Positions 23,601 through 44,132 of a stretch of 64,000 nt of DNA are shown here, one piece after another. Position numbers and translations under genes: made by a program. The stretch is from positions 62,001 to 126,000 of the forward strand of contig NIVC01000976.1 of the NCBI GenBank assembly GCA_002269645.1, given 5' to 3'. The notes beneath the pieces are model-generated. The model was not told where the DNA came from, did not search any database, and was given only the letters and a program-made list of their open reading frames with translations. This DNA is from Macrostomum lignano. Its lineage: Eukaryota. Every line of letters begins with the position of its first letter. Within the stretch, counting starts at the first letter, position 1.

Positions 23601-26600
23601 AGATTCCACAGATCTAGAATCCCAACCTCACAGATCTAGAATCCAAATCCTACAGATCTAGAATCCCAACCTCACAGATCTAGAATCCAAATCCCACAGA
23701 TTTAGAACCCAGATTCCACAGATCTAGAATCCCAACCTCACAGATCTAGAATCCAAATCCTACAGATCTAGAATCCCAACCTCACAGATCTAGAATCCAA
23801 ATCCTACAGATCTAGAATCCAGATCCCACAGATTTAGAACCCAGATCCCACAGATTTAGAACCCAGATCCCACAGATTTAGAACCCAGATTCCACAGATC
23901 TAGAATCCCAACCTCACAGATCTAGAATCCAAATCCTACAGATCTAGAATCCAAATCCTACAGATCTAGAATCCAAATTCCACAGATCTAGAATCCCAAC
24001 CTCACAGATCTAGAATCCCAACCTCACAGATCTAGAATCCAGGTCCCACAGATCTAAAATCCGAATCCAGGTCCCACAGATCTAAAATCCAAATCCAAAT
24101 CCCATATCTAGAATCCAAACCCCACAGATCTAGAATCCAGATCCCACAAAACTAAAATTTGAATCCCGTATCTAGAATCCAGATCCTACAGATCTAAAAT
24201 CTAAATCCCATATCTACAATCCAGATCCCATATCTACAATCTAGATCCCAGAGTCCCCGACCTTGATTTGCCAACCCCGCAGGCGGACCGCATCGTAGTG
24301 CACGCCCTGCACCGCATGAAGTACGCCAAGATCAACAGCGATGAGAACGGTCGCATCCGCAAGGGCTGCATCTTTGCCACCTACGCCTCCCTAATTGGCG
24401 AGTCCGGCAGCGCCAGCAGCAAGTACAAGACCCGCCTAAAGCAGCTGGTCAACTACCTGGGCAGGGAGTTCGAAGGCCTCATCATCCTGGACGAATGCCA
24501 CCGGGCCAAAAACCTGTACCCAGCCGGGTCGCAGAAGCCCAGTAAGACTGGCCAGACTGTGCTGGACTTGCAGAACCAGCTGCCCATGGCGCGGGTTGTG
24601 TACGCATCTGCCACAGGCGCCTCGGAGCCCAAGAACATGGGCTACATGACCCGGCTAGGCCTGTGGGGCAGCGGCAGCGCCTTCCCCACTTTCACCGAGT
24701 TTATCAATACTATTGAGAGGCGGGGCATCGGAGTGATGGAGCTGCTAGCTATGGATATGAAACTGCGGGGCATGTACATCGCCAGGCAGCTCAGCTTCCA
24801 TGTGAGTCTGCGTCTATGCTACTCTACTCTACTCGGTCTCACCTGTACTCTACTCGGTCTCACCCTGCACTCTATTCGGTCTCACCTGTACTCTACTCGG
24901 TCTCACCTGTACTCTACTCGGTCTCACCTGTGCTCTACTCGGTCTCACCTGTACTCTAATCAGTCTCACCTGTACTCTACTCGGTCTCACTTGTACTCTA
25001 CTCGGTCTCACCTGTACTCTACTCGGTCTCACCTGTACTCTAATCAGTCTCACCTGTACTCTACTTGGTCTCACTTGTACTCTACTCGGTCTCACCTGTA
25101 CTCTACTCGGTCTCACCTCTACCCTACTCGGTCTCACCTCTACTCTACTCGGTCTCACCTCTACCCTACTCGGTCTCACCTCTACTCTACTCGGTCTCAC
25201 CTCTACCCTACTCGGTCTCACCTCTACCCTACTCGGTCTCACCTCTACCCTACTCGGTCTCACCTCCGCCACCTTTGCTAAATGTAGTCTCGGCGCTACC
25301 CAATCTAGTCTTATCTCTACTCAATCTAGTCCCTGCCCTACCCAATTTAGTCTCGACTCTACCCAATCTAGTTTCAGCCCTATAGCCAATCTAGTCTCAG
25401 CCTTATAGCCAATCTAGTCTCAGCCTTATAGCCAATCTAGTCTCAGCCCTATAGCCAATCTAGTCTTAGCCCTATAGCCAATCTAGTCTCAGCCTTATAG
25501 CCAATCTAGTCTCAGCCTTATAGCCAATCTAGTCTCAGCCATATAGCCAATCTAGTCTTAGCCCTATAGCCAATCTAGTCTCAGCCTTATAGCCAATCTA
25601 GTCTCAGCCCTATAGCCAATCTAGTCTCAGCCATATAGCCAATCTAGTCTCAGCCCTATAGCCAATCTAGTCTTAGCCCTATAGCCAATCTAGTCTCAGC
25701 CCTATAGCCAATCTAGTCTCAGCCTTATAGCCAATCTAGTCTCAGCCTTATAGCCAATCTAGTCTTAGCCATATAGCCAATCTAGTCTTAGCCCTATAGC
25801 CAATCTAGTCTCAGCCCTATAGCCAATCTAGTCTCAGCCATATAGCCAATCTAGTCTCAGCCTTATAGCCAATCTAGTCTTAGCCCTATAGCCAATCTAG
25901 TCTCAGCCTTATAGCCAATCTAGTCTCAGCCCTATAGCCAATCTAGTCTCAGCCATATAGCCAATCTAGTCTCAGCCCTATAGCCAATCTAGTCTCAGCC
26001 ATATAGCCAATCTAGTCTCAGTCCTATAGCCAATCTAGTTTCAGCCCTATAGCCAATCTAGTCTCAGCCTTATAGCCAATCTAGTCTCAGCCTTATAGCC
26101 AATCTAGTCTCAGCCATATAGCCAATCTAGTCTCAGCCCTATATCCAAACTAGTCTCAGCTTTACCCAATCTAGTCTCAGCTCTATACCCAATCTAGTCT
26201 CAGCCCTATAGCCAATCTAGTCTCAGCCTTATAGCCAATCTAGTCTCAGCCTTATAGCCAATCTAGTCTCAGCCATATAGCCAATCTAGTCTCAGCCCTA
26301 TATCCAAACTAGTCTCAGCTTTACCCAATCTAGTCTCAGCTCTATACCCAATCTAGTCTCAGCTCTATACCCAATCTAGTCCTAGCTCTATACTCAATCT
26401 AGCTTCAAGTTTGCCTAAACCAGTTTCATTGTTTCTGTTCACTGGTGACCTGTTCGCCCTTCCCTTCAGGGTGTGCAATTCGGCATAGATGAGGTGCCCC
26501 TGTGCCAAGAGTACACAGAGATGTACAACGCCAGCTGCGCACTGTGGCAGCAGGCCAAATCCGCATTCGAAGAGGCATCGAAGCGCACGGATCCCGAGGG

Positions 26601-29600
26601 TCGAAATCGCAAGATGGTGTGGGGCCAGTTCTGGTCCGCTCATCAGCGATTCTTCAAGCACCTGTGCGTCTCCGCCAAGATTGATCGATGCGTTGAGGTA
26701 AGAGTTTTTCTTTACAGACTACTGACTGAAGTGCTGTAGAAATACCGGAGCTTTTCTTTACAGACTACTAACAAATAGAAATATCGAAGCTTTTCCTTAC
26801 AGACTACTAACAAGTAGAAATACCGAAGCTTTTCCTTACAGACTACTAACAAGTAGAAATACCGAAGCTCTTCCTTACAGACTACTAACAAGTAGAAATA
26901 CCGAAGCTTTTCCTTACAGACTACTAACAAGTAGAAATACCGAAGCTTTTCCTTACAGACTACTAACAAGTAGAAATACCAGAGCTTTTCCTTACAGACT
27001 ACTAACAAGTAGAAATACCGAAGCTTTTCCTTACAGACTACTAACAAGTAGAAATACCGAAGCTTTTCCTTACAGACTACTAACAAGTAGAAATGCCGTA
27101 GCTTTTCTTTACAGACTACTAACAAGTAGAAATGCCGTAGCTTTTCTTTACAGACTAACAAATAGAAATATCGACTCATTGGTCGGCGTTTCTAGTCACA
27201 TGTGTAAGCGACTGAGTATTTTGTACTAGTGGAGTTGCCCTGAGCTCACAATGTCGCCCCGCTACGCGCCTTCCGCAACAGCTGGCCACGGAGGCGGTGG
27301 AGGCCGGCCACTGCGTGGTCATCGGTCTGCAGTCCACTGGAGAGGCGCGCACCACCGAGATGCTGGAGGAGGCGCAGGGCGATCTCAGCGATTTCGTATC
27401 CACAGCCAAAGGCGTGTTCCAGTCTCTGGTTGAGAAGCACTTTCCGAGCGTGGACCTGTCGCTCATGGACCTGTTCGAGGGTGACGACACTATCGGCGAG
27501 ATCCTGGGCAGTCGGTGGGTTCGGCAGCATCGGCTGCCTGCTGGCGACGGCGCCGGCAGCGGCAGCGAGTCCGGCGCCGCGCCGCCGCGCGAAGTCACCG
27601 GCGAAGATCGGCGACGGGCGGCGCAGCTGAAAGCGGATTTGCTGCGAGCTGTCGAAGCCTTAGACGAGCAGTTGCCAAAGAATGCGCTGGACGAACTCAT
27701 CGACAGGCTGGGCGGCCCAGCGGTGGTAGCCGAAATGACCGGACGGCGTGGCCGAGTTGTTGCCGACGATGCCGGACAGGTAGTTTAAATTTCCGGCGAG
27801 AAATAATCGATTCTTTATACCCCTGGTTCTTCAGGCTCCCACCTGGTCCTTCCTCTTGGCGCCTGGCCCTTCCTGGTCCTCCCACCTGGTCCTTCCTCTT
27901 GGCGCCTGGCCCTTCCTGGTCCTCCCACCTGGTCCTTCCTCTTGGCGCCTGGCCCTTCCTGGTCCTCCCACCTGGTCCTTCCTCTTGGCGCCTGGCCCTT
28001 CCTGGTCCTCCCACCTGGTCCTTCCACCTGGTCCTTCCAACCGGTCCTTCCTTCCACCTGGTCCTCAGACCTGGTCCTCAGACCTGGTCTCTCCTTCAGA
28101 CCTGGTCCTTCCACCCGGTCCTTCCACCCGGTCCTTCCTCCCACCTGGTACTCCCACCTGGTCTTTCGGGGAAATCGCTGGCGTTCACACCTGTGTATTT
28201 TGTTAAGGAAAGTAACGCTCCATTGTAGTTATAATAAATTCCCCTCTGTATCCCACAGGTTACATATGAAAGCCGCCGCGAGACTGAGCTATCGATGGAG
28301 CTGATTAACCTGACCGAAAAGCAGCGCTTTATGGACGGAGACAAACTGATTGCGGTGATCTCAGAGGCTGCCTCTAGCGGTATCAGCCTGCAGGTGGGTT
28401 TGAGTCTGTCTGTCTGTCTGTCTGTCTCTCTGTTATCCATCTACATTATACTACTCAGTGATCAGCTCCAATAAGTAGTTCTGATGCGCATTTTCCATCA
28501 CTGCCAAACCCAGGCGGACAAGCGCGCCCTGAACCAGCGCCGCCGGGTGCACATCACCCTGGAGCTGCCCTGGAGCGCCGATCGGGCCATCCAGCAGTTC
28601 GGGCGCACCCACCGCTCCAACCAGGTGTCGGCGCCCCGCTACGTGTTCCTCATCTCCGAGCTGGCCGGCGAGCGCCGTTTCGCCGCCTCCGTTGCTAAGC
28701 GGCTGGAAAGCCTCGGCGCCCTGACTCACGGCGACAGGCGAGCTGGCGAGAGTCGCGACCTGTCCCGCTTCAACCTGGACAACCGGTTCGGCCGCCTGGC
28801 CCTGGAGACGGCGGTCAAGTCAGCCATTGGCATGGAGGAGCCGATCGCCGAAGTACCCGTCGATCTGTGGTTCGACTTCCCGCAGGCTCTGGTCAGCATG
28901 GGCATGGTTGGCAAGCAGCCAAACGGCTACTACTTGGACAGGGAGTACAACTACATTCCCAAGTTCCTGAACCGCCTGCTCGGCCTGGAGGTGGCCTTGC
29001 AGAACGCGCTGTTCCAGTACTTTGCCGACACTCTGGCCGAGGTGACGCTGAAAGCGAAACGGGAAGGCAAACTGGATATCGGCATTGCCGACCTGGGCGT
29101 CAAGGGGGAGAGTTTGCAGGTGAGGGGCTCAACTCTGCATTCTGGAGTGGATTTTTGTGCAGCAATAAAGTGGGTTGCTGTAGTAGAGTTGCTGTAGTAT
29201 TACTGTAGCTGTAGTAGAGTTGCTGTAGAAGAGTAGCTGTAGTGGACTTGTTGTAGTGGAGTAGCTGTAGTGGAGTTGCTGTAGTAGAGTGGCTGTAGTG
29301 GAGTGGCTGTAGTGGAGTGGCTGTAGTGGGGTGGTTGTAGTAGAATTGCTGTAGTAGATTTGCTGTAGTGGAGTTGCTGTAGTGGAGTGGCTGTTGTAGA
29401 GTGGCTGTAGTGGAGTAGCTGTAGTGGAGTGGCTGTAGTAGAGTGGCTGTAGTGGAGTGGCTGCAGTGGAGTGGCTGTAGTGGGGTGGTTGTAGTAGATT
29501 TGCTGTAGTGGAGTTGCTGTAGTGGAGTTGCTTTAGTGGAGTTGCTGTAGTGGAGTTGCCGCAGCGGTGCTGCAGCTGAATCACAAAGCCGATCCTCCCC

Positions 29601-30853
29601 CCCTATCGCCCCAGATCGAAGACACCGAGTCCTACGAGACGCGCTACTTCGGCGACTGCTGCCAGGTGCACCTGCACACGGTGCGGGCGGAGCGCGGCCT
29701 GTCGTGGCACCGGGCCTCCGAGATTTTCTACCTGCACGAGAGGCCGCACGACGGTTTTTACCTGCCTAAGCAGGCGGCCGCCTCCGGCTTGAAGCAGCCG
29801 CTGCTGGCCGTGGCGCCGTCCAGGAAGCAGCGCAACAAACGGCGCCGACTTGAAGGTGGCGGCTCCTCTTCCACGGCGGCCGATGAGGCGGCCGCGCTGA
29901 TGCGGCTGTACAGGCCGAGCACCGGGCAGCAGGCCAGGCTGGAGGACCTCATCCGCCTGCAGGAGCGCTGGCAGCGGACGACGGACTTGGAGCTGGTCAA
30001 GCGGCTGTGGGAGCAGGTGGGTGTCCTGGTCGGTTTTGTAGTCCATGAGTGAGGCCAGTTTCTAGTGCTGGCCAAGCGGCTGTGGGAGCAGGTGGGTGTC
30101 CTGGTCGGTTTTGTAGTCCATGAGTGAGGCCAGTTTCTAGTGCTGGCCAAGCGGCTGTGGGAGCAGGTGGGTGTCCTGGTCGGTTTTGTAGTCCATGAGT
30201 GAGGCCAGTTTCTAGTGCTGGCCACCTTGCTCACACTCATGAGGGCCAAGCCCCAGGATGCAGACAGTGTACATGTCTGACAGTCAGGGCCGATGTACAC
30301 CCCGTGTGAGCGTGTGTGTGAGTGCTTGCCTGCGTGCAGTATTGGCGCGCTTGCATGTGCTCAGGAGCCAGCGGAATGGCCAGAATTGCTGATTGTGAGA
30401 CGATTTCGCCGAAGGAGCCTCCTTTTAAGCAGCTTTAGGGAGTCTGAGTCATTTGAGTTTGGCCGGCAGCTATGGTTTGCGTATTGTCTGATGGTGTATT
30501 CCTTCTGGTTCTGACGATGATTCAGCACCTGTCTGCAGTTAGTAATCAGACACTGGCCTCCCGCCCAGGTGTACGAGCGGTCGCGCAGCCAGTGCGCCCA
30601 CGCCATCAGCTCGGCCAGCGGCTTGTGCGGCCGTCAGGCGGCCACCGGCAAGCCCTGCGAGGTTGGCCTTCGAGTCCGAGTTTACCACCTGCTGGCCGGC
30701 TCAGTGCTGAGCGTCTGGCCAACACTGGAGCGGGTCTGCCGCAACATGCAGCTGGTGCGCATGCGGGCCAGCGATGGCAAGCGGATTGTGGGAGTCCTGG
30801 TGCCGCCCGAGTCTGTGGGACCTGTTCACTCCTGTCTGAGCCAGATGCAGTGA
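20674..30853 (+). CDS. SBNO1: Strawberry notch homolog (SBNO1/2-like DExD/H helicase-like nuclear protein), 9 exons
   Basis: Exons 20674-21752, 22541-22904, 24283-24801, 26470-26697, 27282-27779, 28259-28393, 28514-29119, 29615-30016 and 30569-30853, all GT-AG with consistent phases. Motifs [83 protein letters not shown]. Confidence 0.95.
21790..22340. repeat. 32 bp minisatellite, SBNO intron 1
   Basis: Unit gagtcagacataatttgtcagtctatgtgaat, about 17 copies. Confidence 0.95.
23020..24250. repeat. 20-22 bp minisatellite, SBNO intron 2
   Basis: Unit agatctagaatccaaatcccac. Confidence 0.95.
24820..25265. repeat. 21 bp minisatellite, SBNO intron 3 (5' part)
   Basis: Unit actctactcggtctcacctgt. 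Confidence 0.95.
25290..26410. repeat. 23 bp minisatellite, SBNO intron 3 (3' part)
   Basis: Unit tatagccaatctagtctcagccc. Confidence 0.95.
26705..27175. repeat. 39 bp minisatellite, SBNO intron 4
   Basis: Unit agtagaaataccgaagcttttccttacagactactaaca, about 12 copies. Confidence 0.95.
27835..28165. repeat. 43 bp pyrimidine-rich minisatellite, SBNO intron 5
   Basis: Unit cctggtccttcctcttggcgcctggcccttcctggtcctccca, decaying into cctggtcct sub-units. Confidence 0.9.
29165..29555. repeat. 14 bp minisatellite, SBNO intron 7
   Basis: Unit ggctgtagtggagt. Confidence 0.9.
29998..30224. repeat. 75 bp triplication spanning the SBNO exon 8 donor site
   Basis: gcggctgtgggagcag|gtgggtgtcc... starts at 30001, 30076 and 30151. 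Confidence 0.95.
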
Positions 30854-30949
30854 CTGCCCAGCTAGTTTTGTCCTGCGCTTTTTATTCTATTTTTAAATTC
30901 CTTTCATTACAGTATGGACTATGTACAGTATGGAGTATGACTGATAGGC

Positions 30950-31465
30950 AAAGTAGGCAGCCTCTCAGACTGATAGGCAAAGTAGGCAGCCTCTAAGATT
31001 GGTAGACAACCTCACAGATTGGTAGACAGCCTCACAAATTGGTAGACAGCCTCACAGATTGGTAGACAACCTCACAGATTGGTAGGCAACCTCACAGATT
31101 GGGAGGCAACCTCACAGATTGGTAGACAGCCTCACAGATTGGTAGGCAACCTCACAGATTGGTAGGCAACCTCACAGATTGGTAGACAGCCTCACAGATT
31201 GGTAGACAGCCTCACAAATTGGTAGACAACCTCACAGATTGGTAGGCAACCTCACAGATTGGTAGACAGCCTCACAGATTGGTAGGCAACCTCACAGATT
31301 GGTAGACAACCACACAGATTAGTAGGCAACCTCACAGATTGGTAGACAGCCTCACAGATTGATAGACAGCCTCACAGATTAGTAGACAACCTCACAGATT
31401 GATAGACAGCCTCACAGATTGGTAGGCAACCTCACAGATTAGTAGACAACCTCACAGATTGGTAG
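30950..31465. repeat. 20 bp minisatellite downstream of SBNO
   Basis: Unit ggtagacaacctcacagatt. Confidence 0.95.
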
Positions 31466-32109
31466 CCAGAGAGTTCGGAGAGCTGCCAGTCTGTCATTAT
31501 TATCTTATTCCGTCAGTTTCCTATCAGTTTTACTATCTGTAATAATTACATGCGGATCCGCGGCATCTGTGGCTAAAGTGCAATTCCCACATTGTACAAG
31601 CGAGTCCTCGTAGATGCGGCGCCCTACTGATTCAGATTTGTCTACAAACTCTGTTATCCTTTGTTATATTCAATGCCCAGCTTCCTCTGTTGCAGCATTT
31701 ATCAGTCCTTCATCTGCCGCCCTAACATACTGAGCCTTGGGTTTCAATATTTTTAAAGTCGCGCAAATCCAACAGCCAGTGCTTGGTTAAGAGCAAGCGC
31801 TGCGCTTTGTACAGTTGGAAATCAATCAGCCTTGAAGCTCTCCTTTGTTTTGTATTCCACCTCAAATTCATAATAATATGTTACGGTATTATTCTTAAGA
31901 TTGCTACTTTGCTTTGTTACCGTTTGCAAATTCGTAATTTCAAATACAGGGATTTGGTATGCAACTTTCAATGTGTTTGCTCTCCGACTTTGGCTTGCAT
32001 ATTTGTAACAGTGACTGCACACTGTGTGTAACAGTGACTGCAAACTGTGTGTAAGTGACTGCACATTGTGTGTAACAGTGACTGCACACTGTGTGTAACA
32101 GTGACTGCA

Positions 32110-33510
32110 ACAACAACAACAAAACAAAATACGCTGTCATGATGGTAAAAGTCAGCGTCACAGGGCGCGCTTCATGGCTTGGGCGCGAACAAAGGCCGCG
32201 CCACCGGCAGTGTCCGGGGCGCCGGCGTCAGCCAGCAGACAGTCGACATAACGCCGAGTTCGCGCTTGACCTCGCCGGTAGGGTGCCTGCAGCGTGAGCA
32301 GCAGCACCTCCTGCACCGGCTGTGGGCAGTACGACTCGGCGCGGATGAGATGGCCTGCGAGCTGGAGTCGCCGACGGCGCAGTAGATCACTTGGACGTGG
32401 CAGGCCAGCGCGGCGATAGAGTGCCGCGTTGGTGACTCGCTCGACGCCGATGTTGAAGGCGGCGCGCAGCAGACCAGCGTGCGCCGCATCGACTTGCTGT
32501 TCGAGTGAGTCCGTCAGCGTCCAGGTCTCGGCGTTGTACAGCAGGACGGTCTCGATTACCGCCTGGAACAGCGCCGTCCTCTGGCGGTCCGGTAGGGCCT
32601 CGGACTGCAGGACTGCCCTCACAGAACGAAAGGCAGCCCAGGCAAGCCCGCGGCGGCGTCGCAGGTCCTCGCGAGCGTCTGGAACCAGACCGCCGAGGTA
32701 GACGAACTGCTGACATCGCGGGAGTTCGGTCGCCTGCCCGTCAGCGCCTCGGCAAAATATTGCAGCCTCGATGTCGTCCGGCACGCAGAGCACAACGGTC
32801 TTCTGCGTGTTGACCACCAGGCCGACACTCGCCGCAACGGCAACCAGCCTGTCCAGCTGCCGTTGGGCGCCCTCGACGGTCGAGGACAGCAGGGCGAGGT
32901 CGTCGGCGTAGCCAAGCACGCTGAGCCGCTTCTCCGGTTGACGTCGACCCACGCGTCGCTGCAGCAGAAAACCGTCGTCGTCGGTAGGCTTGAAGACCAT
33001 CGAGGCATCTGCCTTCAGTCCTGTGCAGCGAAGCTGTTCAACCGGATGCTGCTTTCGCGGTTGCAGCCCGTGCTGGATCCGTACCTGCGCCCAGAGCAGA
33101 ACGGGTTCCGGCCCCATCGCGGCACAGTGGCGCAGATCCTGGCTCTTCGCCGAGTCATCGAGGAGGCGCGGATTCGTCAGTCGATACTGATTTTAATCTT
33201 CATTGATTTCAAGAAGGCATTCGACTCGGTTGTCAGAGCCGTGCTTCCAATGGTGCTCCGCGCGTACAACGTGCCTGAGCAGCTGATCTCCGCCGTCATG
33301 GCGATGTACCGTGATACGACAGCTGCTGTGACAACACCGGACGGCCTATCGGACTCCTTTGAGACATCCTCCGGAGTGCTTCAGGGAGATACGCTGGCGC
33401 CGTTTCTGTTCGTCCTGGTGCTTGACTGGGTGCTGCGGACTGCTCTTCCTACCGACGACGACGGTTTTCTGCTGCAGCGACGCGTGGGTCGACGTCAACC
33501 GGAGAAGCGG
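32110..33510 (-). mobile_element. RTE-clade LINE insertion with 5' inversion
   Basis: The 3' part lies on the - strand (32988-32110: YADDL, NTQKT, FVYLGG, LLYNAETW, stop at 32160-32158, TTG-repeat tail). The 5' RT part lies on the + strand (32989-33510: RGICL, EQNGFR, FIDFKKAFDSV, GVLQGDTLAPFLF). TSD CAGTGACTGCA at 32099-32109 and 33512-33522. Confidence 0.92.
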
Positions 33511-33511
33511 T

Positions 33512-33760
33512 CAGTGACTGCACACTGTGTGTAACAGTGACTGCACATTGTGTGTAACAGTGACTGCACACTGTGTGTAACAGTGACTGCACACTGTGTG
33601 TAACAGTGACTGCACACTGTGTGTAACAGTGACTGCACACTGTGTGTAACAGTGACTGCGCACTGTGTGTAACAGTGACTGCACACTGTGTGTAAAAGTG
33701 ACTGCACACTGTGTGTAAAAGTGACTGCACACTGTGTGTAAAAGTGACCGCAAACTGTAC
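33512..33760. repeat. 23 bp minisatellite (LINE target; other part at about 32005-32109)
   Basis: Unit acagtgactgcacactgtgtgta on both sides of the LINE. Confidence 0.95.
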
Positions 33761-33776
33761 ACCGGCCATTCCAGCC

Positions 33777-36700
33777 ATGGTCAAGCAATGGCCGCTGGCT
33801 GTCGCAATTCAGAGCCTGCTTGATCTGCTGCTGTCCCTGGTCTGGCCAATGTTCAAGTGGTTGCTAACCAAATTCTCTGGCCGGTGCGAACTGCTGCGCA
33901 TTGTGCTGCGCTATCCGAGCGGCGCCGAGCGCATCTGCAAGCTGGGTAAAGTTTCGCTTGACAACAACTTGTACCTTTGGGTTTATGTGCTCCGTTGTGG
34001 AACACATAATGAATATAGGTCTCTGCATGTGGCAATCTCACTGGCACACTGGTGCCCATCTAGAGACACTGGTACCCATTTAGAGACAAACAGCAAACAT
34101 CTAGAGACACACTAGTATCCATCTAGACGCACACTGGTATTCATCTAGAGGCACACTAGTATCCATCTAGAGACACACTAGTATCCATCTAGAGACACAC
34201 TAGTATCCATCTAGAGACACACTAGTATCCATCTAGAGACACTAGTATCCATCTAGAGACACACTGGTATTCATCTAGAGACACACTAGTATCCATCTAG
34301 ATGCATTGGTCCCGCTGGCACCAGTGCTCACTTTAGAAACTGGCATCTCCATTAAAATATTCTGTAATTCCTCTGTGAAACTTTAGGCCCTTTTAATCTA
34401 TGTACAAATCTCAGCTGCTGTAGAGCAAATTTATTAATGAGGTTTTTCCCCTGAAATTCTTTCTCAGAGCTGGCCATCCGCGCCTCCGGATGCCCCGCCG
34501 TGCGGGCGCTGCTGCCGGCAGTTCAGCCAGCACTGTAGAGAAAATAAGACTAAAAACACTAGAAATAAATTAGATGTTAAATTGAATACTAAGATAAGCC
34601 AGTAAGTGGGCGCAGGGCCCAAACAAGTATATTTATATGACTAATTTAGAGGGGGGTTGACTCCAGATAATAAGGAGAGGGGTGAAGTGCGCGACTGAAG
34701 AGAGAGGCGAGAATGGAGAGCCAATCAGAAGGCAGCAAGGGAGAGAGAGATAAGAATAACAAGATTGAGCTGGACAGAGAAGAGAGAAAACAGAGTAAAC
34801 AGAGACAAGTGAAGGTGAACTAAAGAAATGACTAGGAAAGTCGCGACACTCCCCCCAAAAAATGGAACATTTTTTGAATTTTCGAGTACCATTACCAATT
34901 GAAATTAATGAGTTAGAATTAGGTCGAATTAAATTGAAAAACACATTCACAATAAATGGTGTATAAAACGATTTGAAAAATACATAATGACTAAGAATTT
35001 GAATACAAAAACAGTAGAGTGAATGCAAAATATTAAGAGCGAATTTTAAACTTTAGATTTTTAATGAGTAGTTTTTGAACCAATGAGAAGACTGAAAAGA
35101 CTAAATATATCCACCCTCCCCCTTAAAAATTAGCAATTTTTAATTGTAAATGGCTAGTACAGTTTAGAGAAAACATTAACATTGTCAGTTGAGTAAGAGA
35201 GCTGAGATGAGAGAGATGAGATGAGATGAGAATCAAGTTGATGAAAAGAACAACTGGAGACGACTAGAGACAACTGGAGACACTGACAAGAGAGGAGGGG
35301 ACCGAGTGAAGAAAGTTTGACAAAGACCGGTGAGATTGACTGCCGACACCGACTCCGAAGACGTGACGACGGCCCGAGTTGAATTGTGAATATGCCGCCG
35401 GCACCGACTCCGAAGACGAGACCGACAGCCCGAGTTGAAATGCGAATATGCTGCCGGCACCGACTCCGAAGACGAGACCGACAGCCCGAGTTGAAATGTG
35501 AATATGCTGCCGGCACCGACTCCGAAGACGAGACCGGCAACCAGAGATGAGACGATTGAGAGGCCGGCAGACGAGACGATTGAGAGGCCGGCAACCAGAG
35601 ACGAGACGATTGAGAGGCCGGCAACCAGAGACGAGACGATTGAGGCCGGCAACCAGAGACGAGACGATTGAGAGGCCGGCAACGAGACGATTGAGAGGCC
35701 GGCAACGAGACGATTGAGAGGCCGGCAACGAGACGATTGAGAGGCCGGCAAGCAGAAACGAGACGATTGAGAGGCCGGCAACCAGAGACGAGACGATTGA
35801 GAGGCCGACAAGCAGAGACGAGATGATTGAGAGGCCGGCAACCAGAGACGAGACGATTGAGGCCGGCAACCAGAGATGAGATGATTGAGAGGCCGGCAAC
35901 CAGAGAGGAGACGATTGAGAGGCCGGTAGACGAGACGATTGAGAAGCCGGCAAGCAGAGACGAGACGATTGAGAGGCCGGCAACGAGACGATTGAGAGGC
36001 CGGCAAGCAGAGACGAGACGATTAGGAGTCGATGACGGGATGACGAGATGACTGGTGTAGGGCTACGACTACGACGATGGCATGGCCTTTGCCAGCCTTA
36101 CTGTATTGACTGAATTATTTTCCATTGGGCGCCATGTAGAGAAAATAAGACTAAAAACACTAGAACTAAATTAGATGTTAAATTGAATACTAAGATAAGC
36201 CAGTAAGTGGGCGCAGGGCCCAAACAAGTATATTTATATGACTAATTTAGAGGGGGGTTGACTCCAGATAATAAGGAGAGGGGTGAAGTGCGCGACTGAA
36301 GAGAGAGGCGAGAATGGAGAGCCAATCAGAAGGCAGCAAGGGAGAGAGAGATAAGAATAACAAGATTGAGCTGGACAGAGAAGAGAGAAAACAGAGTAAA
36401 CAGAGACAAGTGAAGGTGAACTAAAGAAATGACTAGGAAAGTCGCGACAAGCACAGCAGGGCGGCGACCGCGGCAAAGACGAGCTGATCTCCGCCGCCCA
36501 AGCTGCCGAGGCCGCTTCGGCCGTGGCGGTGGCCAAGCGCGTGGAGCCGGGCGTGTACCCGCAGTTCGAGTCCGCGCTGGCCGAGGCCGCCATCGCCGTG
36601 GCCAGCCACGACCGACTCTGCCGACGCGCCGACGCCGTCCGACGAGTCGCCTTCAGCAACGACTGCGCCGAGCACAAGGCCAAACTGGCCAAGCTGTGGA

Positions 36701-36784
36701 CCGCCCTCTGCCCGGGACAGCCGCTCTCGGGCCGGATATGCAAGCAGTGGGGCGACATCGGCTTTCAGGTGCGCGGCTCCCGTG

Positions 36785-36827
<43 letters not shown>

Positions 36828-37128
36828 GTCTATTTGTCTGTCTTAGTGTCTGTGTCTGTCTGTTTGTCTGTGTCTCTGTCTGTATGTCTGTGTCTGCTTG
36901 TCTGTCTGTCTGTTTGTGTGTCTGCATGTCTGTCTGTGTCTGTCTGTCTGTCTGTGTCTACTTGTCTGTCTGTCTGTCTGTCTGTCTGTTTCTCTGTCTG
37001 TCTGTCTGTCTGTCTGTCTGTGTGTCTGTCTGTCTGTCTGTCTGTCTGTGTCTGTCTGTTTCTCTGTCTGTCTGTCTGTCTGCTTGTCTCTCTGTCTGCC
37101 TTAGTGTCTGTCTGTCTTAGTGCTTCTG

Positions 37129-37173
<45 letters not shown>

Positions 37174-37697
37174 GCCTTAGTGTCTGTCTGTCTTAGTGCC
37201 TCTGTGTCTGTCTGTCTGTCTGTCTTGAATCCCATGAGCTCTAACAAATCCAGCCGCATGCTCCAAAATCCCGTTGTCAGGGCGACGACCCCCAGACGGA
37301 CTTCCGCGGCATGGGCATGCTGGGCCTGGAGCAGCTGCTGTTCCTGGCCAGCCGCTACCCCAGCCAGGCGGCAGCGGTGCTTAGCCAGAGCCAGCACCCC
37401 GTCAGCGGCTTCCCATTCGCGGTCGCCGGCATCAATATCGGGCACCTGGTCTGGCGACTTCTGGCCGCCCGCAAGTTCCGCAAGCACTTTTACAACCTGG
37501 GCTCCTACGAGCTGGACGACCTGCACCGCCTGTTCTGCTGCCTGTTCCTGCGCTTCGCCGACTTCTGGCAGCGTCAGGGCGCCAGCGTTATGGAGTTCAA
37601 CTCGGTGAAGGCCAAGTTTAAGCGGCTGATTAAGACTGAGGCCGCGCGCTCTGACTGCCTGTTTAGGGCTCCTGAGGAGAGCAGTGAGACTGGGTGA
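33777..37697 (+). CDS. ELMOD2: ELMO domain-containing ARF GAP (ELMOD1/2-like); exon 2 interrupted by an LTR element
   Basis: Exons 33777-33945, 34468-34533 joined to 36455-36768, and 37281-37697. N-terminal [17 protein letters not shown] and GAP signature [23 protein letters not shown]. Removing the insertion and one TSD copy restores the frame (VQPAQQGGD). Paralog assignment (ELMOD1 vs 2) is uncertain. Confidence 0.9.
34060..34305. repeat. 22 bp minisatellite, ELMOD intron 1
   Basis: Unit cactagtatccatctagagaca. Confidence 0.9.
34534..36449 (-). mobile_element. Non-autonomous LTR retrotransposon (TRIM-like), 1916 bp
   Basis: 315 bp LTRs at 34534-34848 and 36135-36449 with TG...CA ends and one mismatch seen by eye. 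5 bp TSD AGCAC at 34529-34533 and 36450-36454. PBS TGGCGCCCAA next to 36135 on the - strand; PPT GGGGGGAG next to 34848. No gag or pol. Confidence 0.95.
36782..37225. repeat. (TCTG)n microsatellite, last ELMOD intron
   Basis: Imperfect tctg array. Confidence 0.95.
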
Positions 37698-37764
37698 TGA
37701 GTGAGTAGTGAGCAGGCATCGCTGGATGATCAGCTAGTGAGAAGTGACACAAATTAGGTGAGCA

Positions 37765-38085
37765 GGTGACACTAGTTAAGTGAGCAGTGACTAGTTAAGT
37801 GAGCAGCTGACACTAGTTAAGTGAGCAGGTGACACTAGTTAAGTAAGCAGGTGACACTAGTTAAGCGAGCAGGTGACACTAGTTAAGTGAGCAGGTGACA
37901 CTAGTTAAGTGAGCAGGTGACACTAGTTAAGTGAGCAGGTGACACTAGTTAAGTGAGCAGGTGACACTAGTTAAGTGAGCAGGTGACACTAGTTAAGTGA
38001 GCAGGTGACACTAGTTAAGTGAGCAGGTGACACTAGTTAAGTGAGCAGGTGACACTAGTTAAGTTAGCAGGTGACACTAGTTAAG
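37765..38085. repeat. 22 bp minisatellite downstream of the ELMOD stop
   Basis: Unit gtgacactagttaagtgagcag. Confidence 0.95.
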
Positions 38086-38829
38086 TGCCCATCCAACGCA
38101 GCTGATTCCAGTGTAAAACGCGTCCAATCACCTTGCGTGAGGCCTCAATCTCTTGCTATTTAATACGTAATCTGTCTTGTTACTCCTTGATTTCTTTCTA
38201 GTGGCAGATGGACTGACCTGGACTGTTTCAAATATACACGACTGCAGACTTTATTAAAGATGTTTTCTTATTTTCTAGCAGATTTTTCTTCAGTCGATTA
38301 AAATGAATTGAGAATCTTCAATGCGATTTGTTAGTTTAGTTGAGTAATGAGTACATTTTAGTTATTGATAAAAATTTGACTAAAATTTGACACATATGTA
38401 CAAGTTCGGGTATATATTTGCTTTATAAAAAGCCAAGACAAAAATTGTTATAAAACTCGCATTGGGCTGAGTGTTGTACACTTGGAACAAGCGGTTATAT
38501 TGATAAACTAATGGCTATGATTAAGCACTGATAATGACACGCTCAAAAATTGTTTATATTACTAGCATAAAAAACATAATAAGTAGAATATGTCGAAATT
38601 CATTCTCATTTTAACAAAAGTAAGCAGAACGAAAATGGAATACTTAACAAATACATTTTGTCGCCATTGGCAGCTGGTAACACAAACCCTGCAGAGGAGA
38701 GTTTCTAAGAATTTGTACTAATGCGGTCTTTGTTCAGTAGAACGGATAGAGGCGACAGACCTTATACAGCACCTTTGCCTATCGGTTAATAAGTCTATAT
38801 GATCTGTTATGAGCTTTTTGTCTCTCTGT

Positions 38830-39163
38830 AATAAGCCTGTTTGTCTGTCATGAGCATGTTTGTCTGTCCGTCTGCTATGGGCATGTTTGTCTGTCCGTCT
38901 GCTATGGGCATGTTTGTCTGTCTGTTATGAGCCTGTTTGTCTGTCTGTCTGTTATGAGCCTGTTTGTCTGTCCGTCTGTTAGGAGCCTGTTTGTCTGTTA
39001 TGAGCCTGTTTGTCTGTCCGTCTGTTATGAGCCTGTTTGTCTGTCTGTCTGTTATGAGCCTGTTTGTCTGTCCGTCTGTTATGAGCCTGTTTGTCTGTCT
39101 GTCTGTTATGAGCCTGTTTGTCTGTCCGTATGCTATGGGCATGTTTGTCTGTCTGTTATGAGC

Positions 39164-39195
<32 letters not shown>

Positions 39196-39391
39196 TATGA
39201 GCCTGTTTGTCTGTCCGTCTGTTATGAGCCTGTTTGTCTGTCTGTCTGTCTGTTATGAGCCTGTTTGTCTGTCCGTCTGTTATGAGCCTGTTTGTCTGTC
39301 TGTCTGTTATGAGCCTGTTTGTCTGTCTGTCTGTTATGAGCCTGTTTGTCTGTCCGTATGCTATGGGCATGTTTGTCTGTCTGTTATGAGC

Positions 39392-39427
<36 letters not shown>

Positions 39428-39590
39428 TATGAGCCTGTTTGTCTGTCCGTCTGTTATGAGCCTGTTTGTCTGTCTGTCTGTCTGTCTGTTATGAGCCTGT
39501 TTGTCTGTCCGTCTGCTATGAGCCTGTTTGTCTGTCCGTCTGCTATGAGCCTGTTTGTCTGTCTGTTATGAGCCTGTTTGTCTCTGTTAT
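38830..39590. repeat. Compound TCTG-based minisatellite
   Basis: Units of ttatgagcctgtttg plus (tctg)n. Confidence 0.95.
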
Positions 39591-40246
39591 GCACATGCTA
39601 ATCTGTCCAAAAGCAGCAATTTACTAATAAAAAAGTGAATTTCTCTCGTTTCAAAAGCAGCCATGCAGCCACAGAGCCGAAAGCAAGTGAAATCAGGTGA
39701 ACAAAAGTCCCGGAGCTGGCGATGCAGCATAGATGACAGGACGGGTTCTGCTTACCTAGCAAGGTGTAAAATATGGCTACAAACAATAACGGAGGCAATA
39801 ATTATGGCTAATTAATACTAGTCAGTCAGTAGTGCTAGTAGATATACATTTAATAAAAAGTAATTCATTTTTTCAAAAAATCCTGCAGCGACTATCTGGG
39901 AAAAAGTAGTGAATTATTCTTGCTAAATAACAAAATCAACAATGATATATACTGCATAATGAAATCAAAATCAAAAGTTCATTTTTTTAAAAACAAAAAC
40001 ACGAGCAGAAGCTATATATGGAAAAAGAACAGAGATAAAAAGTGCAGCAGTCTGTAAAAAACTGGAGAATTAATTTTTATAAAAGAACGCCGTTAGCAAA
40101 AATTTCGGAGTGCAGCAGAGCCACCAGGCACCTGTCAATCTCAAATCAAAGACAGCTCAATTGGGTTATGGCTAATTAAATATTACTAAAACAATTAAAC
40201 AATAACAAGCAGCTGCCGCCTTCTAGAAGAGAGTTGTTCAGTTCAA

Positions 40247-40373: not shown

Positions 40374-42676
40374 GCTCCCGTGAACAGCTGCAGCTGAGCG
40401 GAGCCGGCCAGGAGGGCCAGCTGGTTGGCGAGCTGCTGGTTGGTCCACTGGTTGGCCAGCGGCTGGCCAGGGAGCGGCATGAGCTGCTGCTGCTGCTGCA
40501 GCTGGTGCTCCTGGAGCATGCGATGACCAACAGGCTGCTGCCTGAAGTGCTGCGGCTGCTGAGGCGGCTGCTGCTGGTTAACGAATTGAGCCGGATTAGG
40601 CGCCTCATGGCGGCTGGCTAGATGTGGATTAGCCGAATACGGATTAGCATGATAATAGGGATTAGCTGGCTGATAAGGATTTGGATTAGCCTGGGGATTA
40701 ACCAGGTGATGAGGATTAGCCTGGGGATTAACCAGGTGATGAGGATTAGGATTAGTCTGAGGATTAGTCTGAGGATTTACCAGGTGATGAGGATTAGCCT
40801 GAGGATTAGGATTAGTCTGAGGATTAACCAGGTGATGGGGATTAGCCTGAGAATTAGGATTAGTCTGAGGATTAACCAGGTGATGAGGATTAACCTGACG
40901 CAGATTAGCCTGTTGAACTTTAGCTTGAGCCGGATTAACCGTTGGCGGTGGATTAGCGGACTGAGGTGGATTAGCGGACTGAGGCGGATTAGCGGGCTTC
41001 TTGAATTCCTCCTGTTGAGAAGGCACCACCGGCTGATCGGCAGACGCAGGCGGGGAGTCGAGCGGCTCGAAGCGGTGGTGCAGCAGCTTGGCGTTCAGAG
41101 CGGCAAGCCGGTCCCGACGGCTCTGCAGTCGCAGGGCGGCGGACTCCAGGGCGCGGTTGTCTCGCTGCAGGCGGTGCAGGCAGGTGAGCAGCGGCGCCAG
41201 CTCGGAGCCGGCCAGCATCTGCATGAGGAAGTCGCCGGTCTGCTGCCACTGCCAGTCCAGCAGGCCGTCCAGCGACAGCCCGGCGCCGGCCGCGCCGCCC
41301 GGATCGTTCAGGTCGCCCAGGCTGAGCCCGGCCGGCAGGCTGGACGGCCCGGCGTAGCCGCCAGCGGCATCGACAGCAGACGGAGCTGCGGCGGCCGATG
41401 CCGGCTGAAACTCCGGGCCCAGGCTGGTCGGGTCCGCCTCCTCGGACGATGGCGAGGACGACGCCTCATCGCCCTCCGCAGCATCATTCTCATCAGACGC
41501 CGCCGCCGACGAAGTGCCGGCTGAGCCGCCATCGCCGCCGAGCTCCGTCGCAGGGCGCAGCAGTGGCAGCCGCTGCGACTTCTTCGGCGGCTGGCGACGA
41601 TCGCGGAGCAGCCGGCGATGCTTCGGCAGACGCTGCTGCGCCGGCGGCTGCGACCGTTTTGTCGCCGACGTCGATGTTGTTGTCGTTCGGCCAGATGTCG
41701 GAGTCGACGTCGAAGCGGCGAGCGTCGGCGGATGCTGGCGCAGGCGCAGCGAGGCGAGCATCGCGCGACGCCGATGACGAAGGGCGACAGCCGAGGCGGC
41801 GGAACCTTTCGTTGTCGTCGGCTGCTGCCGCGGCGTGGGGCGAAGTCGCCGCCTGTCAGAACCGCTTGAACTGGCGGCGCCGCTGTTTTTGAGCAGCTTC
41901 TCGCCGGCCACGCGGGCTCGGGGCGACGGCGTTGGCGGCGGCGGCTTCTTTGGCAGAGTTGTGGCTTCGCCGCTCTCGCCAGCCAGCGGCTGCAGCGGCC
42001 GCATGGCTGGCGATGAGGTGGGCGGAGGCGCGTGCGCCGGGCAGAAGGCTGCGAAGGACGGCTTCTGGCCTGACAGGTCGCCACCGCCGCTGCTGCTGCT
42101 GCTGGCCTGCGAATTACTCACCTGTCTGAGCAGGCCCCTGGCCTGAGCGCAGGTGGCGTGCAGCCCCAGCCGGCACCGCTGGCACCGCAGGGTGGCGCCG
42201 CCTCCGCCGCTGCCGATGGCCTCGACGCCAACCGAGCCGGAGCTGGCGGGGTCGCCGCACAGGCAGCAGGGCCGGGCGAGCCGGTCGGGGGGCAGGCCGG
42301 CCAGCAGGATCGGCTCCAGCCTGGCGAGGTCGCCGAAGCAGACCTCCGGGATGGCCAGGGCGCACAGCACGTGGCACCAGCCGCTGCCGCGGTCCGTCCG
42401 CTTCAGCGGGCCGCCGCGCACCGGGCAGAGCTCGCAGCGGACCCGGGCCGAACGCTCGTGCCGGAACTCGCACCGGCGGCACAGCCAATTCTTTTGTGGT
42501 TCGGAGTTCGAATCCTCAACGACGCCGTAGCAGCCGCGATGCACGGCGACGCCGCCGCACTGGCCGCCGGAGCAGCGGAGCAACTCGGCGCGGCCGCCAG
42601 AGCAGCCGCAGACGCCGCAGACGTTGGCGGCAGTGGTGGAGCCGTTTGAGCTGGGGGCTGCTGGCGTCAGCAACAT
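40247..42676 (-). CDS. MLLT10: AF10/AF17-like protein (PZP module plus OM-LZ), single coding exon, 809 aa
   Basis: ATG at 42676. PZP: VAVHRGCYGVV...WLCRRCE...RVRCELCP..GPLKRTD..WCHVLCALAIPEV...EPI...LHATCAQ. OM-LZ: LDGLLDWQWQQTGDFLMQ...LTCLHRLQRDNRALE...RDRLAALNAKL. Q-rich tail. Confidence 0.92.
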
Positions 42677-42809
42677 CCCCGGGTGTCTGGCGGCGCAGCA
42701 GCAGGCGGCGGGATTTCAGGGCTGAGCGGGGCTTAAAGACTCTGGAATGATGGGGTGGGGATAACTGGGATTTCTGAACCTTATGAGACTTGCTGGCATC
42801 TGGCATCAG

Positions 42810-43480
42810 TCAATGACACCTGGAATCAATCAATGACACCTGGACTCAATCAATGACACCTGGCATCAATAAATGACCCCTGGAATCAATCAATGACACC
42901 TGGAATCAATCAATGACACCTGGACTCAATAAATGACACCTGGAGTCAATCAATGACACCTGGAATCAATCAATGACACCTGGAATCAATCAATGACACC
43001 TGGAATCAATCAATGACACCTGGACTCAATAAATGACACCTGGAATCAATCAATGACACCTGGAATCAATCAATGACACCTGGAATCAATCAATGACACC
43101 TGGACTCAATCAATGACACCTGGACTCAATCAATGACACCTGGACTCAATCAATGACACCTGGAATCAATCAATGACACCTGGAATCAATCAATGACACC
43201 TGGAATCAATCAATGACACCTGGACTCAATCAATGACACCTGGAATCAATCAATGACACCTGGAATCAATCAATGACACCTGGAATCAATCAATGACACC
43301 TGGACTCAATCAATGACACCTGGACTCAATTAAAGACGCCTGGCATCAATCAATGACACCTGGAAACAATCAATGACACCTGGACTCAATCAATGACACC
43401 TGGCATCAATCAATGACGTCTGGCATCAATCAATGACACCTGGCATCAATCAATGACGTCTGGCATCAATCAATGACATC
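42810..43480. repeat. 20 bp minisatellite upstream of AF10
   Basis: Unit tcaatcaatgacacctggaa. Confidence 0.95.
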
Positions 43481-44132
43481 ACTATAAATTCTATGCTTTT
43501 TTCGGCTGTAAAAGTAGGAAGCAAATAAAAAGGATCAATTGTCAGTGAAAAATAATAAAATTGTCAGGCTGAAATCAAACAGTATTATTGCAAGATTTCA
43601 ATATTGAGCCGTTATATAAATGTTAAAACAGCCGTCAATCTAACGAATGAACAGGCTCTTACATATCATAGTATAACAAAACCATGTTATTCACTACTCG
43701 TAGGCAATAAAAATAGTAAAGTACAATATTATTTAGAAAAATATGCACGATAGAACTGCAAGAAATTCATTTTCATGACAGTATAATCGCTAAAATACAG
43801 TGGCTCCAAAAATACTTGAATAAAAAGTGAACGCTTAGCATGATCGAGTGGGCCTAAATGTATATTGTGTGAATCTTAAACTCGGTCAGATATCTCAACA
43901 AAATAAGGAAGCGCGCAGTACTTAGGCAGCGAAAATAATAACCGAATCTACATCTGCCTACTATCACTTAGCCACTGAGTAGTATATGATGGATAAAATC
44001 AATTGACGCTGTGACTAAATTCAATGCTGTGCTTCTTAGTAAATTATAAAATTGACACAAATTTTTGACAATAAAAAATTTCATTTAAAAGGCATGAATG
44101 CATAAATCGGTTTTCTGATCATTATTTTTTTA

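Follow-up and report, generated by a model that had tools for sequence, protein, structure and literature searches.

A non-coding LTR retrotransposon inserted into coding exon 2 at one of the three ELMOD loci of the Macrostomum lignano genome assembly

One of three near-identical ELMOD copies in a genome assembly of the polyploid flatworm Macrostomum lignano carries a 1,916-bp non-coding LTR element in its second coding exon, and the locus very probably represents a redundant ELMOD homeolog or haplovariant that the insertion has recently knocked out. The interrupted copy lies in the window, the 64-kb stretch of DNA that was analysed as a whole (M. lignano DV1, assembly Mlig_3_7, GCA_002269645.1, contig NIVC01000976.1, about 62001-126000); positions are given in window coordinates unless stated otherwise. 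The two further ELMOD loci of the same assembly, g1 (protein P0001) and g2 (protein P0085), on contigs NIVC01002820.1 and NIVC01000033.1, are both intact and both have an empty target site. With these other two copies intact, the insertion would amount to the loss of a redundant gene, a fresh knockout of an ordinary kind.

The interrupted ELMOD gene and its target site

Removal of the element together with one AGCAC copy resulted in an open ELMOD frame of 321 codons (966 nt) with AG/GT at all boundaries, and this model was collinear with the two intact paralogs. The restored protein matched the Pfam family ELMO_CED12 (PF04727) with an E-value of 1.3e-43 (gathering cut-off 23.3 bits), and its top matches outside Macrostomum were animal ELMOD1/2 proteins with 35-45% identity. 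The GAP motif of ELMOD proteins, reportedly described by East et al. in 2012, is said to read W-x3-G-F-Q-x3-P-x-T-D-F-R-G and to contain the catalytic arginine. In an alignment of nine proteins this motif was intact, and W177, G181-P187 and T189-G195 were invariant. The 966-nt model and the alignment confirmed an earlier reading of the window made from the sequence only, which had described the ELMOD exons, the splice sites and the TDFRG motif as intact. Judged by its sequence, the interrupted gene is an ELMOD, i.e. a predicted ELMO-domain Arf-family GAP. The coordinates of all features are listed in Table 1. Two nucleotides ahead of the ATG, a TTCCAG at 33769-33774 matches the spliced-leader (SL) trans-splice acceptor motif of M. 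lignano (PMC8629364).

Table 1. Features of the interrupted ELMOD locus and of the inserted element (window coordinates).
Feature	Position	Strand	Details
ELMOD exon 1	33777..33945	+	Met1 to first base of codon 57; located by tblastn with P0001/P0085; gtaaag donor
ELMOD intron 1	33946..34467	+	GT...AG; contains a 22-bp minisatellite, 34045-34301
ELMOD exon 2, 5' part	34468..34533	+	codons 57-78 and first base of codon 79
Left target-site duplication	34529-34533		AGCAC; last 5 nt of exon 2, 5' part
LTR	34534..34848	-	315 bp; 3' LTR in the element's own (minus-strand) orientation
Internal region, non-coding	34849..36134	-	1,286 bp
Polypurine tract (PPT)	34849..34862	-	minus strand reads TTTTTTGGGGGGAG; adjoins the element's 3' LTR
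Tandem array, 56-bp unit	35340-35550		x3.8; element internal region
Tandem array, 30-bp unit	35530-36023		x~18; element internal region
Putative primer-binding site (PBS)	36125..36134	-	minus strand reads TGGCGCCCAA; adjoins the element's 5' LTR, downstream
LTR	36135..36449	-	315 bp; 5' LTR in the element's own orientation
Right target-site duplication	36450-36454	.	AGCAC; flank alignments of the empty sites L001 and L002 overlap by exactly 5 bp
ELMOD exon 2, 3' part	36455..36768	+	remainder of codon 79 through Q183; includes E153K and WGDIGFQ (first half of GAP motif)
E153K	36676-36678		AAG; private substitution in exon 2, 3' part
ELMOD intron 2	36769..37280	+	gtgcgc...gtcag; contains a (TGTC)n microsatellite, 36785-37225
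ELMOD exon 3	37281..37697	+	G184 to G321 and stop; carries catalytic Arg192

The element interrupts codon 79. It is flanked by a perfect target-site duplication (TSD), as had been claimed before: AGCAC is present on both sides, the identity between the flanks stops at 5 bp, and the empty sites of the paralogous loci L001 and L002 contain the sequence in a single copy. In L001, positions 10389-10880 aligned with 34045-34533 of the window and positions 10876-12451 with 36450-38021, and the flank alignments of L002 behaved in the same way. Exon 2 was also found uninterrupted at L001 and L002 by tblastn. Reading through from exon 2 into the element gives ...AVQPAL and then a stop codon, the second codon beyond the insertion point (P77, A78, L, stop), in agreement with the immediate PAL* stop of the sequence-only reading, and joining 34533 to 36455 opens the frame again. 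With the stop at this position, the predicted product of the interrupted copy is no more than an N-terminal stub of 79 residues that lacks the ELMO domain. The sole GenBank CDS for this copy, which stems from RNA-seq-guided annotation, is P0084, a remnant of 128 aa (37311-37697) that lacks the catalytic Arg192 because it starts at Met194.

Structure and classification of the inserted element

Both LTRs are bounded by TG...CA and repeated in the same orientation. They are identical at 314 of 315 positions (A at 34565, C at 36166), which corresponds to a divergence of 0.32% and to the single mismatch counted before. The orientation of the element, absent from the earlier account, is antisense to ELMOD. 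On the ELMOD-sense strand the element contains AATAAA/ATTAAA hexamers, among them the AATAAA at 34564-34569 of the 34534..34848 LTR, inside which the sole LTR mismatch falls; in the sense of the element, the same LTR shows TATAAATA about 100 nt ahead of the LTR end. The putative PBS sequence TGGCGCCCAA is a contiguous match of 10 nt to the 3' end of the canonical metazoan tRNA-Lys(CUU). A tRNA scan of the 64-kb window for a partner of the PBS resulted in nothing but a doubtful tRNA-His inside a minisatellite.

The non-coding nature of the element, likewise claimed before, was supported by several analyses. Its open frames are solely mechanical ones generated by the tandem repeats, its three longest ORFs had no Pfam match, including gag/pol, and no Rfam match was found inside the element; the region 33500-37800 gave two sub-threshold chance matches to Rfam, both outside the element. 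The canonical heat-shock element pattern (PMC12801592) was absent from the LTR and from the whole element. Searches by blastn of the 64-kb window and of both paralogous loci, L001 and L002, detected no further copy of the LTR or the internal region, and an exact pattern of LTR end and PBS had no match in metagenome and viral contig collections.

TRIMs form a size class with a total length below about 1-1.5 kb and LTRs of about 100-250 bp. Since 1,916 bp with 315-bp LTRs exceeds this class, the TRIM label was withheld; the element is larger than typical TRIMs and much smaller than LARDs. With TRIMs (Echinococcus ta-TRIM, PMC4558846; bivalve TRIMs, PMC6934838) and plant LARDs it shares TG...CA LTRs, a PPT directly before the 3' LTR, a short TSD and the lack of gag/pol, and its putative PBS likewise directly follows the 5' LTR, whereas its interior differs from both in consisting mostly of the 30-bp and 56-bp tandem arrays. 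From its sequence features, the element is best called TRIM-like or small LARD-like. A Cassandra-like, small-RNA-derived element was also considered and rejected, as the element has no Rfam match; the Rfam search found no small-RNA-derived LTR in it, in contrast to Cassandra or Helenus/Ajax.

The autonomous LTR retrotransposons catalogued for M. lignano belong to Ty3/Mdg4 (Mag, CsRN1, Gmr1/Osvaldo, Mdg3/Micropia), Ty1/Copia and Bel/Pao, and transcription has been reported for many LTR families of M. lignano (PMC12801592). The share of LTR retrotransposons in the genome is 21%, and a "2-kb long LTR retrotransposon" has been mentioned (PMC5730564). The inserted element has the host and the overall LTR architecture in common with the catalogued families, and recent activity is plausible, but it is without a reverse transcriptase (RT) and its LTR is without a canonical heat-shock element. 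As it encodes no RT, it would escape a catalogue based on this gene. Mobilisation in trans would be required because the element is without gag/pol, and the proteins that move it are likely to come from one of the catalogued autonomous families.

Intact copies and relative age of the insertion

A search for an uninterrupted ELMOD paralog or haplotype, which the sequence-only reading had put forward as a check, returned g1 and g2, each with a 966-nt CDS and with identical splice sites. The window differed from the g1 locus by about 1% mismatches (166 in ~17,092 aligned bases) and showed 84-92% identity to the g2 locus. The empty sites indicate that the element inserted after the window copy and g1 had separated. 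This relative dating is based on the empty sites and not on LTR divergence, since one LTR mismatch is not statistically below the ~1% divergence between window and g1 (Poisson P(<=1 mismatch) about 0.19).

The window-specific coding changes are R4Q (codon CAA) and E153K, both non-synonymous, with zero synonymous changes, and E153 is invariant among the nine ELMODs aligned. Codon 293 reads AAG in the window copy and AAA in g1. A second private insertion is present just upstream in the interrupted copy (32110-33511). The private changes could be read as hints of relaxed constraint, with two changes being too few for a dN/dS test.

The genome of the neopolyploid M. lignano comprises three subgenomes, S, L1 and L2 (SSL1L2 or SSL1L1L2L2), with a SNP divergence of 1.9% for L1 versus L2 and 2.4% for L versus S, and long indels touch about a third of its sequence (PMC10733133). 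The assembly is redundant because DV1 has extra large chromosomes (PMC5730564). The three ELMOD loci appear to fit the published S/L1/L2 structure, the assignment of copies to subgenomes being by relative divergence only.

Alternative readings and the fate of the interrupted copy

The rescue of a transposon-bearing exon at the RNA level has precedents. Maize waxy alleles with a retrotransposon in an exon are partly rescued by cryptic splicing. In Drosophila, the 412 element in an exon of vermilion is spliced out (Fridell et al. 1990), and PMC2586383 cites this case together with Tc1, which splicing removes in C. elegans, and an intron that Ds created in maize. The ELMOD copy resembles the vermilion and waxy alleles in having an LTR element in a coding exon, where GT/AG pairs within or close to its LTR ends could take it out, but splicing was shown experimentally for the vermilion and waxy alleles, whereas for the ELMOD copy it is a matter of arithmetic, with poor site contexts. 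As a nascent intron, the element would be removed in frame from a cryptic exon-2 donor (GTGCGG at 34500 or GTTCAG at 34521) to the AG at 36441, 36456 or 36459, and an ELMOD of 308-321 aa with a slightly altered linker would be made. Stop-free in-frame combinations of donor and acceptor are indeed present. Donor 34521, earlier claimed to be in frame with the acceptors 36456 and 36459, does give open products with them, of 316 and 315 aa; the third in-frame cryptic donor, GTGCGG after GCC at 34500, and the in-frame acceptor at 36441, inside the LTR, had been missed, while the frame shift claimed for donor 34535 held in a hand check (+4, -1 and -4 nt with acceptors 36451, 36456 and 36459). The residues affected sit in a stretch that is missing from most orthologs, where a small deletion could be tolerated, and the cryptic donor GTGCGG is similar to the authentic exon-2 donor GTGCGC. 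However, the candidate donors GTGCGG, GTTCAG and GTAGAG all deviate from the M. lignano motif GT[G/A]AG, and the sequence upstream of the acceptors 36456 and 36459 (AAAGTCGCGACAAGCACAG) is rich in purines and offers neither a pyrimidine tract nor [T/C]TNCAG (motifs: PMC8629364). The RNA-seq-guided annotation contains the 128-aa ORF only and no in-frame product of ~315 aa, poly(A)-like hexamers lie in ELMOD sense within the element, and with g1 and g2 intact there is no selection for a splicing rescue. We consider intron formation very unlikely. Exon-2 skipping, tried as another means of rescue, was ruled out, as exon 2 has 380 nt and exon 3 would be out of frame if it followed exon 1 directly.

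Trans-splicing of the SL to the AG at 36456 or 36459 could bypass the element altogether. The AUG of the SL would then be in frame with codon 80 or 81 onward, and an N-truncated protein of ~242 aa with the full ELMO domain would result. The SL sequence of M. lignano terminates in ATG and about 30-39% of the genes are SL trans-spliced (PMC5730564, PMC8629364); at both acceptors this ATG falls in the ELMOD frame. Moreover, the older ML2 gene model P0002 (UniProt A0A1I8J2R9), which has K153, begins exactly at codon 81 (window 36460). This start is explained equally well if a gene predictor broke off where the element sits, P0002 contains frameshift artefacts, and ML2 and Mlig_3_7 have raw PacBio data in common (PMC5730564). 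The context of 36456/36459 also deviates from [T/C]TNCAG (PMC8629364), and the GenBank annotation of the interrupted copy covers Met194 onward only, so that we give this route even less credence than intron formation. Taking cis-splicing (34500/34521 to 36441/36456/36459) and SL trans-splicing at 36456/36459 together, it is improbable that the interrupted copy still makes an ELMO-domain protein; if it did, a retrotransposon would have been caught becoming an intron, or a translational rescue would be donated by the SL. The element might, on the other hand, be present in no worm, its position in the exon being the product of a mis-join or a chimeric read: Mlig_3_7 was built from noisy PacBio reads (PMC5730564), and 1,131 of its scaffolds, 36% of the assembly length, were classed as S/L-chimeric (PMC10733133). 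Yet a full LTR-PPT...PBS-LTR with a perfect 5-bp duplication of a target that both empty paralogous sites contain once bears the mark of an integrase and not of mis-assembly, and the ML2 gene model that shares the private K153 likewise breaks at the insertion point. An artefact of assembly is hardly credible.

The sequence-only reading had left a choice between a fresh knockout allele, a dispensable duplicate and an intron being created. The first two are probably both true, given the intact g1 and g2 with their empty sites in a neopolyploid genome, whereas the third lacks support in view of the poor splice sites and the annotation of 128 aa only. In the proposed knockout, an autonomous element would have provided, in trans, the Gag-Pol that reverse-transcribed the RNA of a non-autonomous LTR retrotransposon and integrated it antisense into codon 79 of ELMOD exon 2. 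The integrase cut AGCAC with a stagger of 5 bp, as the duplication shows directly. The AATAAA/ATTAAA hexamers could terminate the ELMOD transcript early. Because g1 and g2 are intact with an unoccupied site, the loss of the interrupted copy would be buffered and close to neutral, and the state may be polymorphic or haplovariant-specific rather than a fixed loss. The insertion would be a step in the transposon-driven fractionation of genes that follows polyploidy. As in such fractionation, one of three homeologs is disabled by a transposable element and the others are intact, and the disabled copy has a private upstream insertion and non-synonymous changes; in contrast to the typical case, the ELMOD event is very recent and the remainder of the gene is still intact.

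In other respects this is an ordinary transposon insertion, which leaves long-standing questions untouched. It would provide a clean, datable example of a neopolyploid animal genome beginning to shed redundant gene copies, the agent of loss being a mobile LTR element that encodes no protein and whose movement would depend on proteins provided in trans. One ELMOD copy of M. lignano is predicted to be already null, which bears on experiments with knockouts or gene dosage in a species with three subgenomes. A non-autonomous LTR family of roughly 2 kb may be active in M. lignano now, invisible to RT-based catalogues.

The interrupted gene and its inserted element

The ELMOD gene of the window was modeled with its second exon split by the element, AG/GT at every boundary and a coding length of 966 nt (321 codons). 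Its product matched Pfam ELMO_CED12 (1.3e-43), and the closest proteins outside Macrostomum were animal ELMOD1/2 (35-45% identity). The GAP motif of ELMOD spans the exon 2/3 junction, and its core was invariant in an alignment of nine proteins. The sequence-only reading that exons, splice sites and catalytic motif are intact was upheld. The same reading had found that read-through stops at once (PAL*); translation into the element indeed gave ...AVQPAL and then a stop, and joining 34533 to 36455 regained the open frame. The insertion point lies within codon 79, ~60 residues N-terminal of the ELMO domain, where the alignment showed a stretch without counterpart in most orthologs. The 128-aa GenBank protein of this copy (P0084), encoded on NIVC01000976.1 of GCA_002269645.1, comprises Met194-Gly321 from exon 3 only and is without the catalytic Arg192; the contig DNA at this protein's locus proved identical to the window. 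Two nt ahead of the ELMOD start codon, and kept in both intact copies of the gene, is a TTCCAG that fits the M. lignano spliced-leader (SL) trans-splice acceptor motif [T/C]TNCAG; judged by this motif, ELMOD transcripts probably undergo SL trans-splicing.

Direct reading and repeat analysis placed a 315-bp direct repeat at each end of the element, both beginning with TG and ending with CA. As read from the sequence alone, the LTRs differed at a single base (34565 A vs 36166 C) and the TSD was perfect, with AGCAC on both flanks and a flank identity of exactly 5 bp and no further. The element is 1,916 bp long; its 1,286-bp interior holds two tandem arrays, and every long ORF of the element runs across these. 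A Pfam search of these ORFs gave no match and an Rfam search returned nothing within the element. On the minus strand, TGGCGCCCAATGG starts right after one LTR (putative PBS) and TTTTTTGGGGGGAG precedes the other (polypurine tract). As both are readable on that strand, the element is antisense to ELMOD, a point absent from the sequence-only reading. The putative PBS has a 10-nt match to the 3' end of the canonical metazoan tRNA-Lys(CUU), which may differ from that of M. lignano. An ARAGORN scan of the window made one call, a tRNA-His of 93 nt; it falls in a 22-bp minisatellite and is probably a false positive. In element orientation, a TATAAATA box lies ~100 nt ahead of the LTR end; a heat-shock element was sought in the LTR and none was found. 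Blastn revealed no further copies in the 64-kb window or the two homeologous loci, and exact-pattern scans gave none in metagenome and viral contig collections.

Structurally the element qualifies as an LTR retrotransposon, of the non-autonomous kind. It is oversized for a typical TRIM and undersized for a LARD, and is best called TRIM-like or small LARD-like; the nearest described flatworm analogue is the ta-TRIM of Echinococcus (PMC4558846). The catalogued LTR families of M. lignano are defined by RT domains (PMC12801592), and a protein-less element of this kind would therefore go unlisted.

Features of the window and of the homeologous loci
Feature	Location	Detail
ELMOD exon 1	33777-33945	
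ELMOD exon 2	34468-34533 + 36455-36768	interrupted
ELMOD exon 3	37281-37697	
P0084 coding region	37311-37697	
TTCCAG	33769-33774	
LTRs	34534-34848; 36135-36449	
AGCAC flanks	34529-34533; 36450-36454	
Tandem array, element interior	35340-35550	56-bp unit x3.8
Tandem array, element interior	35530-36023	30-bp unit x~18
Second insertion	32110-33511	1,402 bp
ORF with RVT_1 fragment	32596-33531	
SBNO-family helicase gene	27216-30850 (+)	
tRNA-His call	23840-23932 (-)	
Minisatellite examples	22984-24175, 24782-26400, 26658-27242, 30882-31561, 38776-39632	
Minisatellite examples	42654-43533, 44076-45483, 47252-48490, 49032-49954, 51750-52200	
g1 locus (L001)	NIVC01002820.1	
g2 locus (L002)	NIVC01000033.1	

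Intact homeologous copies and the age of the insertion

The best protein match of the window ELMOD was M. lignano BOX15_Mlig027399g1 (P0001, 321 aa; g1), whose 90% cluster has three members: g1, a second intact protein (P0085, 321 aa; g2) and the unnamed 128-aa P0084. Both intact loci are syntenic with the window, with a strawberry-notch (SBNO)-family helicase gene upstream of ELMOD; a tyrosine-phosphatase gene lies downstream at the g1 locus, likewise in the window. Exon 2 is uninterrupted at both loci, so that the proposed search for an uninterrupted ELMOD paralog or haplotype yielded two in the same genome. L001 10389-10880 aligned to window 34045-34533 and L001 10876-12451 to window 36450-38021, the two alignments overlapping by the 5-bp target; the same pattern was seen at L002. 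The SBNO-family gene of the window is on the same strand as ELMOD. In the window and at the g2 locus it encodes 1,367 aa; the g1 locus has only a 480-aa model, and the gene there may be truncated or mis-annotated. Minisatellites with 14-41-bp periods crowd window 21700-52200 and vary in copy number among the three loci; some yield long spurious ORFs (e.g., the 25-bp repeat at 47252-48490).

The window differed from L001 by ~1% mismatches (166 of ~17,092 aligned bases) and was 84-92% identical to L002. Of the 966 nt of CDS, 5 distinguish the window copy from g1, and g2 is ~20 nt from either, which places g2 as the outgroup. The site is empty in both other copies and LTR elements are not known to excise cleanly; the insertion is thus younger than the split between the window copy and g1. 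The LTR divergence of 0.32% (a single mismatch, not significantly <1%; Poisson, P ~0.19) agrees with a recent insertion. Three subgenomes make up the neopolyploid M. lignano genome: S is carried on the small chromosomes, and L1 and L2 are two versions of the large fused one, 2n=8 worms being SSL1L2 and 2n=10 worms SSL1L1L2L2. By SNP divergence, L1 is ~1.9% from L2 and L ~2.4% from S, and long indels touch about a third of the sequence (PMC10733133). Because of these subgenomes the Mlig_3_7 assembly is redundant; LTR retrotransposons account for 21% of it, and repeats of the simple and tandem types for 15% (PMC5730564). The three-copy divergence pattern fits the published picture, from which we infer that the window copy and g1 would represent L1/L2 and g2 would represent S.

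Polarized by g2, the coding changes of the window lineage are R4Q and E153K, both non-synonymous, and those of the g1 lineage one non-synonymous and two synonymous. E153 is invariant in 9/9 aligned ELMODs; codon 153 (36676-36678) is AAG (Lys) in the window copy and in the older ML2 model P0002, and GAG (Glu) in g1 and g2. E153K may reflect relaxed constraint, or it may be a damaging substitution that predates the insertion. The window copy also carries a second private insertion, absent at L001 and L002, that lies 266 bp ahead of the ELMOD start codon in a 23-bp minisatellite. This insertion contains a reverse-transcriptase fragment (RVT_1, 8.7e-19) cut off on its 3' side, as well as a 63-68-bp inverted repeat in its interior, and is ~75% similar to window 6505-6754. 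Such a structure is unusual for a simple LINE insertion. These decay signs point the same way, in counts too small for a formal test.

Consequences for the ELMOD transcript

The sequence-only reading had left three possibilities: a fresh knockout, a dispensable duplicate, or an intron in the making. Transposons are known to be spliced from exons, as with 412 in Drosophila vermilion, Tc1 in C. elegans and Ds in maize (cited in PMC2586383), and enumeration of every single GT...AG removal restoring the ELMOD frame without a stop gave 28 combinations. Their donors were 34500 (GCC|GTGCGG), 34521 (GCA|GTTCAG) and 34535 (ACT|GTAGAG). Donor 34521 with acceptor 36456 or 36459, already proposed as in frame, proved so (316 or 315 aa), and the enumeration added the donor at 34500 and an acceptor inside the LTR at 36441. 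In M. lignano, donors are enriched in GT[G/A]AG, acceptors in CAG and SL acceptors in [T/C]TNCAG (PMC8629364); none of the three donors fits, and acceptors 36441, 36456 and 36459 are preceded by purine-rich sequence. RNA-seq-guided annotation of this copy contains the 128-aa ORF only, and the ELMOD-sense strand of the element carries AATAAA at 34564 and 34951 and ATTAAA at 34928. The first might serve as a cryptic poly(A) signal in ELMOD transcripts entering the element; the sole LTR mismatch falls within this hexamer (AATAAA at 34564-34569 in the left LTR vs AACTAAA-type at 36165-36170 in the right). In-frame removal of the element by splicing is conceivable, yet nothing in the present evidence favors it and we regard it as very improbable. 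Skipping of exon 2 was rejected as a rescue, since the exon is 380 nt and its loss shifts the frame.

ATG forms the 3' end of the spliced leader of M. lignano (PMC8629364) and would fall in the ELMOD frame if the leader were joined to the AG at 36456 or 36459. P0002 (UniProt A0A1I8J2R9), a 235-aa model with a frameshift-type stretch, has its first residue precisely at codon 81 (window 36460), right after CAG 36457-36459, and carries K153. This start is equally well explained by a gene predictor breaking at the insertion, and ML2 and Mlig_3_7 have PacBio data in common (PMC5730564); P0002 probably represents this interrupted locus as rendered by a noisier assembly, and such a bypass is unlikely.

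With g1 and g2 intact and their sites empty, the knockout and duplicate readings are well supported and very probably correct, whereas intron gain, with its poor splice sites, is unsupported. The observation itself holds up, and as a finding it is an ordinary one: the window case is another instance of known phenomena, a non-autonomous LTR element and a redundant homeolog lost through insertion after polyploidy.
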